A model generated the notes under the pieces. The model ran no database searches and was not told the origin of the DNA. It saw only the letters and a list, made by a program, of their open reading frames with translations. From positions 176,449 to 240,448 of the IMG/VR virus record IMGVR_UViG_3300041416_000287: DNA of 64,000 nucleotides, one strand, 5' to 3'. The position numbers and the translations under genes are program-made. Of the stretch, positions 61,401 through 62,358 are shown piece by piece. Positions within the stretch are counted from its first letter, which is position 1; each line of letters opens with the position of its first letter.

Positions 61401-62358
61401 TCGCGATACCTATATTCAGATCTTGGATATTATTATGAACCGAGGTAGTCTTGATGAGGCCATTAATGTCCTAATCGATGCCATTCAGAATTTGTTGGAT
61501 GGAAAAGTGCCTCATGATGACCTCGTGATTATTCGCGAGTTAGGTTCTAATTATAAATCGGACAGTTATTTCATGAAGGTCTTCGCCGATGATCTCAAGA
61601 AAGCTGGGAAGATCGTCAATCCCGGCGATCGACTAGACTTTGTAATTGTCGAGGATCCCACAGCAACGTTATTGGGACATAAGATGCGTCTGGTCGAACA
61701 GTATGTTGAACGGTTGCAGACCCCGACGCCTGAGCGGATCGATTATAACTATTATATTGAGAAGGTGCTTATGAATCCAATTAATCAGCTCTTTGAGGTA
61801 GGATTCAAGAATGAGATTGCTCAGCTTCAGCATGTGTCATATAAGCCGACGAATCGACATAAAGCGATTTATCTAGACCGGCCAGTGCAGATCATTCTAA
61901 AGTTACGCGAACGTGGTTATGATCTGAAAATGTTCAAGGAGGCCGTTCGCTACAATGTGGCGAAACTAAAGGGTCAACCAACATTGACCCTGAATATTAA
62001 TCCAATTGTTCAGCAGGCTCAGGTTCTAATTCCGGCCGTTGAATTGAAGGATCCAGGGGAGACGAAGCCGGTTGAGCAGAAACTAATGACGCTGAAGATA
62101 ATACCGCCACGACTAACACCACTAGCGCAGCCAGCGCCAACACTGACCCAGTCAGTGCCGGTGCAACCACATCCTCGAGTTCCCACTTCTCCTTCTCTGA
62201 TTCTACCTCGAATGGCGATAAGAGTACCAGAAGTGCCAAAACCGGTTCCACAGACTCCTAGCGTTAGCCAAGTCCCAAGAATGATGACACTAAACATCAC
62301 GCCACAACAGTTGGCTAGTCGGGTTCCGGCTATTCCCATTATAAATGGACAAGTCTGA
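58432..62358 (+). CDS. polB: Family B DNA polymerase with fingers insertion and Pro-rich C-terminal tail
   Basis: FDIEC, GYNILGFD, YCIRD, DFMSLYPS, KITANSFFG, YGDTDS, KKKYA, RRD. Confidence 0.97.
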   Translation: MNGAPNKLDTTHEPLDRPEVEETTVTAHAFDWTVKDMQGDDDHVAIHCWSLDRESKPNLLRFIDFPAFCHVELPLFVRNHTYQWRPAAVDSFMRMLAERLGAHAPVRYVFKQSKKTYYYRGQRTFPMLQLSFNSLRAMQHCTNLLADPLKTDDWGFIKCTVWEDSISIVRKLLTVRDVRYSQWFTVTARQVEPELRISTLEREYIAEWDTMQIVPPEQCTAWSTQPGVLAFDIECYSNNHRAMPDKYNALHVAYMISCIYQRYRKAETRQRYGIVIGDCDHIPPEKLANCNVIRVNTEYEMVEAFARIVRETDPEILAGYNILGFDYTYLDHRVKRWLKQWPAMGRIDGETPNMTSKSWKSGAYGHQSINILQMEGRISIDLLPIVKRDYKLDKYDLNTVCKKFIGKTKHDIKPAEMFLIYEDMRRTLAAWIAIAKEAQDNPALLNDATYLARKEEAQEAFDVAKAETTRVLEYCIRDSELVIELMEKMNIWVGLVEMSNIVGTTIVELFTRGQQVRCLSQIYDKAARLGFVLDKRDVPGFKFAGGFVYDPIPGLYDNIICLDFMSLYPSIMMAYNICYTTLIPPELEDLIPDEDCHIIDFDQDEIEGGEDDEDEEEEEVLKELNEKGKKGRTVKKHYRFKFFKWQEGLLPQLVRELVAQRRAVNRQIAQLKEELKGLERTEDTRAHLEAYLSGTVQIQSVKAAGQRVKELTESKPPAAPEAITAAKRDLAIAQLFDVTVTQKRLDDAVAAKPPTHPALLELARLEHEVAQAYTNKQDAALRVKLAQLQVSREGRTVRIEEIKLQIVVLDKRQWALKITANSFFGFLGVHHGGKMPLIEGAMSITAKGRELIGKVREYIEQKYQGVQIYGDTDSVMMHLPQIKHSRECNYWGSRLAQEISGIKAGEKDCDGVLWPEGRPGLFPPPLGVDFEKAMRLLCLKKKKYAAYLIGKDGSFKTEDVMDKHGNIIGNRLMMLKKGIILARRDNCKFLRDTYIQILDIIMNRGSLDEAINVLIDAIQNLLDGKVPHDDLVIIRELGSNYKSDSYFMKVFADDLKKAGKIVNPGDRLDFVIVEDPTATLLGHKMRLVEQYVERLQTPTPERIDYNYYIEKVLMNPINQLFEVGFKNEIAQLQHVSYKPTNRHKAIYLDRPVQIILKLRERGYDLKMFKEAVRYNVAKLKGQPTLTLNINPIVQQAQVLIPAVELKDPGETKPVEQKLMTLKIIPPRLTPLAQPAPTLTQSVPVQPHPRVPTSPSLILPRMAIRVPEVPKPVPQTPSVSQVPRMMTLNITPQQLASRVPAIPIINGQV

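Follow-up and report, generated by a model that had tools for sequence, protein, structure and literature searches.

The PIP (PCNA-interacting peptide) box, Qxx[ILM]xx[FY][FY], is near-universal in archaea and eukaryotes. It is a short peptide located in the disordered termini of polymerases, FEN1, repair nucleases and helicases, several copies may occur in one client, and in cellular and archaeal proteins it is carried by the extreme C-terminus of FEN1 and by the C-terminal tail of the family-B DNA polymerase (PolB). In this work, the final 64 kb of a linear IMG/VR record of 240,448 bp (IMGVR_UViG_3300041416_000287, positions 176,449 to 240,448; JGI metagenome 3300041416, contig Ga0439241_0000035) were analysed, and this whole stretch is called the window hereafter. 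The tail of the PolB encoded in the window presents three copies of a peptide, here named motif A and summarized as [KR]-x-psi-T-L-[NK]-[IV]-psi-[PS], which resembles the PIP box in all these respects, including the positions in FEN1 and PolB. Unlike the PIP box, motif A has neither the Gln nor the aromatic pair, being a strand-like psi-T-L-N-I-psi segment that follows Lys or Arg and is fenced by Pro, and its binding to a clamp is putative.

The C-terminal tails of other viral family-B polymerases bind processivity factors, as in T4/RB69 (gp43–gp45) and in the herpesviruses (UL30–UL42 and UL54–UL44), where the very C-terminus of the enzyme flexibly tethers a clamp-like factor. Each of those tails is a single, polymerase-specific element, whereas motif A is common to at least five enzyme families. 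The bacterial beta-clamp motif (QL[SD]LF and QLSLPL types) is likewise extended and aliphatic, has an L-[ST]-L core and occurs at the N- or C-termini of many clamp clients. However, motif A lacks the leading Gln and the terminal Phe of that motif, Gln is not enriched at its positions -1 and -2, no match to PF00712 (DNA_pol3_beta) was found in the record, and the clamp of this lineage has, by modelling, a PCNA fold. The SUMO-interaction motif is approached in part by L-N-I-psi, but the flanks of motif A are Lys/Arg and Pro rather than acidic, and two of the three copies in PolB have a polar residue (N or T) rather than a hydrophobic one following the core.

Multiple weak motifs joined by flexible linkers, within one client or one holoenzyme, are found in Spd1, which has tandem motifs (PMC10939359), in human Lig1, which has two PIPs (PMC9767926), and in the Pol delta subunits. 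These are PIP-like motifs with shown binding, whereas the copies described here are all of one type, share a single chain and differ in number from relative to relative. A different kind of likeness is offered by mimivirus, in which replication proteins, including the PolB R322, occupy the outer layer of the viral factory and RNA polymerase the inner layer, and R322 turns cytoplasmic upon deletion of the scaffold gene ols1 (PMC12415211). That setting apart of a replication class from transcription matches the specificity of motif A; on the other hand, no sequence signal is described in that study, nor a sorting motif there or in a second viral-factory paper, and no homolog of the scaffold was identified here. 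Full-text searches, motif strings included, of the literature on giant-virus PCNA and PIP boxes, viral factories and mimivirus replication proteins returned no description of motif A, which we class as a shared docking peptide on the disordered termini of replisome clients.

The polymerase and its C-terminal tail

The record is a giant-virus (Nucleocytoviricota) contig, 46% complete by the CheckV estimate; the GC content is 46%. The PolB gene (58432..62358, +), called identically in the JGI contig record, encodes 1308 amino acids (aa) with the exonuclease and polymerase domains of family B both found by Pfam: DNA_pol_B_exo1 (PF03104) at aa 159–400 (E 6e-39) and DNA_pol_B (PF00136) up to aa 1122 (E 2e-67). 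The adjoining capsid gene matches Capsid_NCLDV, and DUF5757, DUF5857 and GMC oxidoreductase are further Pfam matches in the window. Together with the origin of the two DUF families, which we take to have been built from mimivirus proteins, these matches suggest kinship with Imitervirales.

In the AlphaFold2 (AF2) model of PolB aa 995–1308, built with 40 relatives, the thumb is confident to about aa 1179, with predicted local distance difference test (pLDDT) values of 85–96. Past aa ~1184 the values fall to 48–62 and regular secondary structure is absent, and the tail is thus predicted to be intrinsically disordered. The first-pass annotation had described this tail as rich in Pro, Gln and Val and as carrying LTLNI, MTLKI(I) and MTLNI at intervals of about 30–60 aa, and both statements are borne out. 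The tail comprises 127 aa (aa 1182–1308; 61975..62355, +), its composition is 19.7% P, 11.0% V, 10.2% Q, 10.2% L, 8.7% T and 8.7% I, and the linkers between the three cores measure 29 and 61 aa. It contains no F, Y or W.

The alignment of the tails of 16 close relatives revealed five islands in the fixed order A1-A2-B-A3-C, set among variable linkers. When our sequence was compared with the 15 other tails, the mean identity was 0.46–0.61 in the islands vs 0.15 across 82 linker positions. Motif A1 (LTLNI, aa 1185–1189; 61984..61998, +) stands directly after the last thumb helix and scores 17.0 bits on a position matrix trained only on relatives; its position is degenerate in most relatives (VVLNV, LVLNV). 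Motif A2 (KLMTLKIIP, 62080..62106, +; core MTLKI, aa 1219–1223, at 62086–62100) scores 13.6 bits and is aligned with [KR]xLTLNI[IVM]P across the 15 relatives. Motif A3 (RMMTLNITP, 62278..62304, +; core MTLNI, aa 1285–1289, at 62284–62298) reaches 18.8 bits, and this near-C-terminal copy is the one most widely retained among PolB relatives.

The two remaining islands add to the first-pass account, which listed the A copies only. Motif B (PTSPSLILPRMAIRV, aa 1251–1265; 62182..62226, +) has the consensus PT[ST]P[ST]LI[ML]P[RK]MA[LIM][KR] and a mean identity to relatives of 0.59, and is also found in many more distant PolB tails. Motif C (RVPAIPIING, aa 1297–1306; 62320..62349, +) has the consensus R[VI]PA[IV]PI[IM]xG and a mean identity of 0.61.

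Each copy of motif A is encoded by different codons (TTG ACC CTG AAT ATT, ATG ACG CTG AAG ATA and ATG ACA CTA AAC ATC), and no direct DNA repeat was found in the PolB tail; these two facts indicate that the peptide has been kept, rather than that the DNA was recently duplicated. The opposite strand of the tail has open reading frames (ORFs) of 84 and 106 aa (61997–62339, -). They are most likely a by-product of biased composition, since the conserved peptide islands belong to the plus frame.

Elsewhere in the polymerase domain, PolB carries an insertion of ~200 aa (aa ~600–800; 60230–60830), in which an acidic run, DDEDEEEEE, is followed by long helical, coiled-coil-like segments. In many relatives the PolB has inteins (PF14890) instead of this acidic and helical insertion.

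Motif A in other proteins and in relatives

The number of copies of motif A was far above that of shuffled sequences. None of 200,000 shuffles of the tail gave at least three matches to [LMIVF]TL[NKR][IV], and the 245 ORFs of the record contain 11 strict matches, vs 2.1 +/- 1.5 in 500 shuffles. The matrix trained on relatives gave 10 hits of at least 10 bits, vs 0.89 +/- 0.95 in 200 shuffles (maximum 4), and all of them fall in terminal or Pro-rich segments. This census of carriers covers one 46%-complete genome record.

FEN1 (447 aa, Pfam XPG_N and XPG_I; 53536..54879, +) carries KKFLTLKIVP at its C-terminus (54841–54870), with the core LTLKI at aa 439–443, and has the variant MMLNI at aa 394 (54715–54729), in agreement with the one exact copy plus one variant reported by the first-pass annotation. 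Just past this first A-like copy there is a C-like sequence, RMPPVIPLG. The GIY-YIG nuclease (22566..23045, +) has the two copies attributed to it, both N-terminal: LTLRV at aa 2 (in MLTLRVIRP, 22566–22592; 12.5 bits) and LTLNI at aa 15 (in RPLTLNILRP, 22602–22631; 17.5 bits). An ExoIII-type AP endonuclease (Pfam Exo_endo_phos; 48802..49659, +) carries HLTLNIVQP at its N-terminus (48811–48837; residue 5, 18.9 bits), and outside the window a RecD-like superfamily 1 helicase has a matrix hit at residue 7 (L007:2739-5210).

Three carriers are proteins of unknown function. The matrix places the motif at residue 32 of a 393-aa protein (L001:17517-18698), which looks MgsA_C-like by eye, an impression to which Pfam and PDB sequence searches gave no support. 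A 324-aa protein (32753..33727, -), for which neither a Pfam family nor an Atlas match was found, carries in its Pro-rich N-terminal half a B-like PLYMPRIG (33407–33430) and the A motif RHLTLRVV at residue 170 (33203–33226). A 140-aa protein begins with MAKLTLRVITP, a match to the strict pattern that stands outside the 10 matrix hits.

Motif A was not found in the Rpb1, XRN, DEAD helicase, protein kinase, collagen-like proteins or glycosyltransferases of the record, nor in its thymidine kinase (Pfam TK). Because the carriers of known function are DNA-replication and repair enzymes, while RNA polymerase, XRN, the kinase and the others are without the motif, the tag marks the former class. Topoisomerase II, D5 primase-helicase and DNA ligase genes were not found in the record, and a query of viral contigs with the topoisomerase II of G001 returned only itself.

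Weak motif-like N-termini were seen in two Cys-rich proteins. One (SSIKLNIF) is an EsV-1-7 cysteine-rich repeat protein by Pfam (G000 105940-108111, -; L006:15940-18111), with a sub-threshold weak match to NERD nuclease; the other (GLKLRVV; G000 165175-166215, -; L010:3175-4215) has, by eye, similar repeats and an HNH-like end, and was negative in Pfam.

The best 120 PolB relatives, which are 48–93% identical in the exonuclease/N-terminal region, were compared. The pattern [KR]x[LIV]TL[NKR][IV] is present in most of them, within tails that are otherwise unalignable, and most of the remainder close with a degenerate version, psi-x-L-N-[IV]-psi, which often forms their final residues. One relative has at least 4–5 tandem degenerate copies, in the form of PLKLIIDP units. 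Similarly, the strict motif occurs in the last 110 aa of 56 of 120 FEN1 relatives, most others having degenerate C-terminal forms, and it is the conserved element nearest to the C-terminus of FEN1-relative tails. The order of islands in these tails is Y[IV]PP...psi-x-L-N-I, a C-like R-x-P-x-x-P-I, VPLPxVPQPT (in many relatives) and a terminal KFLTLN[IV]. A canonical PIP box, Qxx[LIMV]xx[FYWH][FYWL], was found in none of the 120 FEN1 relatives, and the PolB tail, being free of F, Y and W, has none either. The consensus from 110 instances of motif A is P-[KR]-[PFK]-[LIV]-T-L-[NK]-[IV]-[IVLM]-[PS].

The ortholog of the AP endonuclease in a syntenic relative (L029), with a PolB 85% identical to ours, begins with the degenerate KKLQLRLVS. 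Searches of viral contigs found no relatives of the AP endonuclease or of the helicase, and no relatives were found by a PolB search of genome_contigs or a FEN1 search of G001.

Islands of conservation in a disordered, fast-evolving tail and recurrence in at least five unrelated enzyme families are the features expected of short linear motifs. These comparisons of sequence therefore support motif A as a real, selected, docking-type short linear motif common to DNA-replication and repair enzymes, and in this part the docking interpretation of the first-pass annotation stands. Its two proposals on copy number do not. It had matched the three copies to a trimeric partner, and at a stringent score 0, 1, 2 and 3 copies are found in 46, 27, 18 and 3 of 94 PolB relatives, three strong copies being limited to our virus and its nearest kin. 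It had also supposed that copy number sets a binding hierarchy, and the relatives of PolB and FEN1 are similar, with means of 0.77 and 0.88 (0, 1 and 2 copies in 41, 48 and 27 FEN1 relatives). As three copies are rare and PolB does not exceed FEN1, copy number does not seem to be tuned to a trimer.

A divergent PCNA-fold family and the putative partner of motif A

Two whole genomes of more distant relatives (G001 and G002) each encode a 321-aa protein that matches PCNA_N weakly and, like P0245, matches the PCNA of PDB entry 3p91 at E 0.008. An exhaustive representative search collected 236 relatives of this ORF, none of them detected by Pfam, while a word search with the G001 protein returned only itself. 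In the AF2 model of one member, P0312, the core has pLDDT 95–98 and two domains of PCNA fold, and Foldseek aligned it to PCNA structures with template modelling (TM) scores of 0.78–0.83 and E of about 1e-15, at 13–14% identity. On these models, these viruses have a very divergent PCNA. The family (L037:5983-6921, +; L026:1480-2445, +; P0245–P0394) comprises at least 236 proteins of metagenomic giant viruses, with ~300 aa and a variable low-complexity insertion in domain 2.

IMG/VR contig 3300048574_000478 encodes one member (L037:5983-6921; hidden Markov model (HMM) E 6e-115) together with a PolB (L011:9977-13900), 68% identical to ours, and a FEN1 (L011:4772-6142), both of which bear the motif; the clamp gene is situated ~31 kb further downstream than this PolB. 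Collinearity between our contig and locus L011 begins upstream of FEN1 and extends over PolB as far as the capsid gene, 145 bp after which our contig ends. The genes of the L037 locus were not found in our record, except for a match to its Erv1-family gene, 33% identical and located elsewhere. Neither the G001 PCNA-like protein as query nor an HMM from 150 family members matched anything in the record, and a metagenome scan with the close PCNA alignment gave 11 relatives, none from our sample.

The PCNA-like gene retains the same neighbours in distant relatives. Beside it there is a divergently transcribed ATPase with AAA Pfam hits (L037:4127-5809, -; L028:53-1627, -), with two P-loop regions in the L037 copy, which could be a clamp-handling factor. 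A 524-aa AAA protein of our record was compared with the AAA gene that neighbours P0312, and orthology was ruled out. An OTU-like cysteine protease is also nearby (L037:2463-3332, -, by Pfam OTU; L026:627-1475, -, by eye). Unknown proteins of 335–344 aa (L037:7558-8565, +; L046:10187-11221, +), encoded two genes downstream of the PCNA-like gene in L037, end in the docking motif (KVTLQILPSS and RPITLNVTPIMK); the 335-aa L037 protein is RuvC/A22-like by eye, and Pfam and PDB sequence searches gave no support to this.

The reading that we tentatively prefer, with a probability of about 0.4, is that in this lineage motif A has taken the place of the PIP box and docks clients on the divergent clamp. 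Adopting a short beta-strand, it would bind the virus's own sliding clamp, a very divergent one of PCNA type, and so tether PolB, the flap nuclease and the repair nucleases to DNA. With multiple copies on its long flexible tail, the polymerase would gain avidity and rebind faster, and would be kept near the ring while other clients use a pocket; motifs B and C would be extra contacts specific to PolB, and the copy number would not be tuned to three. This reading is supported by the position of motif A in the disordered C-termini of FEN1 and PolB, which is that of the PIP box, by the complete loss of the PIP box, by a classical list of clients and by the divergent clamp, whose divergence is as would be expected if hub and motif had changed together. 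If it is correct, the PIP box has been substituted in a large group of giant viruses whose PCNA has also diverged beyond detection by Pfam, a clear case of hub-motif co-evolution, and the replisome clients of uncultured giant viruses would be predictable from sequence.

Several points weigh against clamp docking. No PCNA, beta-clamp or RFC gene (PF00705, PF02747, PF00712, PF08542) was found in the 240-kb record, an absence best explained by the break of the contig before the corresponding position. Motif A is chemically unlike the PIP box, without its Gln and its aromatic pair, and a tag specific to replication could equally be a sorting signal of the mimivirus outer-layer type. Moreover, P0312 has a genuine appended motif, GRLTLNVRPN, at its own C-terminus, and a clamp that is itself tagged for docking is more readily explained by a third-party hub. 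In the AF2 model this appended motif is undocked on the core, at pLDDT 44–59, a weak and uninformative result.

P0312 is the only one of three PCNA-like candidates in which the appended motif is genuine. P0270 was rejected as a truncated ORF whose last residues belong to an internal strand, and visual comparison of P0349 with the family consensus suggests that its C-terminal match is the final strand of the core. Only 7–9 of 101 PCNA-like proteins show an LN[IV] signature in the region of the internal strand, and this is given little weight. The complex prediction of the heterologous PCNA-fold core of P0312 (residues 100–416) with PolB tail residues 92–127 had a score of 0.00 and counts neither way.

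The partner could instead be the viral factory itself. Motif A would then be an address label, binding a scaffold or acting as a condensate sticker, that sorts enzymes of DNA replication and repair, and the clamp too in some viruses, into the replication sub-compartment, with stronger partitioning for more copies. This is the main rival of clamp docking, and condensate partitioning, the second option of the first-pass annotation, agrees with the published mimivirus observations. We find it unlikely, while noting how much it accounts for: enzymes that replicate and repair DNA bear the tag and Rpb1, XRN and the DEAD helicase do not, just as mimivirus layer sorting separates replication from transcription proteins; one PCNA-fold protein (P0312) has an appended copy; and the window looks related to Imitervirales by the four Pfam families mentioned above, two of them probably of mimivirus origin. 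However, the record yielded no candidate scaffold and no repeated complementary motif, and a factory label does not require the exact positional match with the PIP boxes of FEN1 and PolB. The conservation of T and N besides L, L and I, that is, on both faces of the strand, also suggests a folded pocket over loose stickers. The more specific proposal that motif A is a sequence-specific address code, which through a scaffold would direct these enzymes, and sometimes the clamp as well, to the replication layer of the factory, is likewise doubtful. A factory-sorting signal would offer a handle on the open mimivirus question of sorting between outer and inner layers (PMC12415211), and the address code, if true, would be the first defined client-recruitment signal for organelle-like factory condensates.

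Docking on another replisome hub, such as the double AAA ATPase beside the PCNA-like gene, the clamp loader, the primase-helicase or the single-stranded DNA-binding protein (SSB), seems improbable. The logic of a hub with clients that bear terminal peptides is common in replisomes, and the divergently transcribed AAA ATPase does adjoin the PCNA-like gene in L028 and L037, but in known SSB and helicase hubs the arrangement is the opposite, with the peptide on the hub and the pocket on the client, and none of the candidate hub genes is in the record.

We hold it very improbable that the copies pair mutually, as Pro-flanked, beta-prone hexapeptides forming homotypic or heterotypic beta-zippers by which the tagged proteins would co-assemble without a folded receptor. 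The core does have alternating hydrophobic residues fenced by Pro, several copies occur per tail, with the tandem PLKLIIDP units of one relative, and single copies are found on many proteins; nevertheless, AF2 shows no strand pairing among the three copies, and the conserved polar T and N and the basic residue at -2 are more typical of pocket recognition.

Lastly, the idea that the matches are chance in a low-complexity Pro/Val/Gln region, or that the tail is non-coding, for which the two antisense ORFs could be cited, as these are found in regions of biased composition, is refuted by the shuffles of the tail and of the proteins of the genome, by the conservation of the plus-frame islands at 50–93% identity in relatives, and by the gene call on the record, which includes the tail.

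Other genes of the record

A protein of 1190 aa (15112–18684, +) has four N-terminal SAP-like repeats, a Pro/Val-rich repeat region with an acidic patch and, after it, a large domain without Pfam match. Its gene occupies the most GC-rich part of the window (52–53%), and a role as DNA-binding scaffold is possible. An 862-aa protein (6520–9108, -) combines a FYVE zinc finger with a PI3/PI4-kinase domain and is a virus-encoded phosphoinositide kinase. In addition, an ORF of 1150 aa (L003:9177-12629, -; G000 45177-48629) contains Rpb1 domains 1–5, the last one partial, followed by a C-terminal Rpb6 domain, and may represent a split Rpb1 fused to Rpb6.

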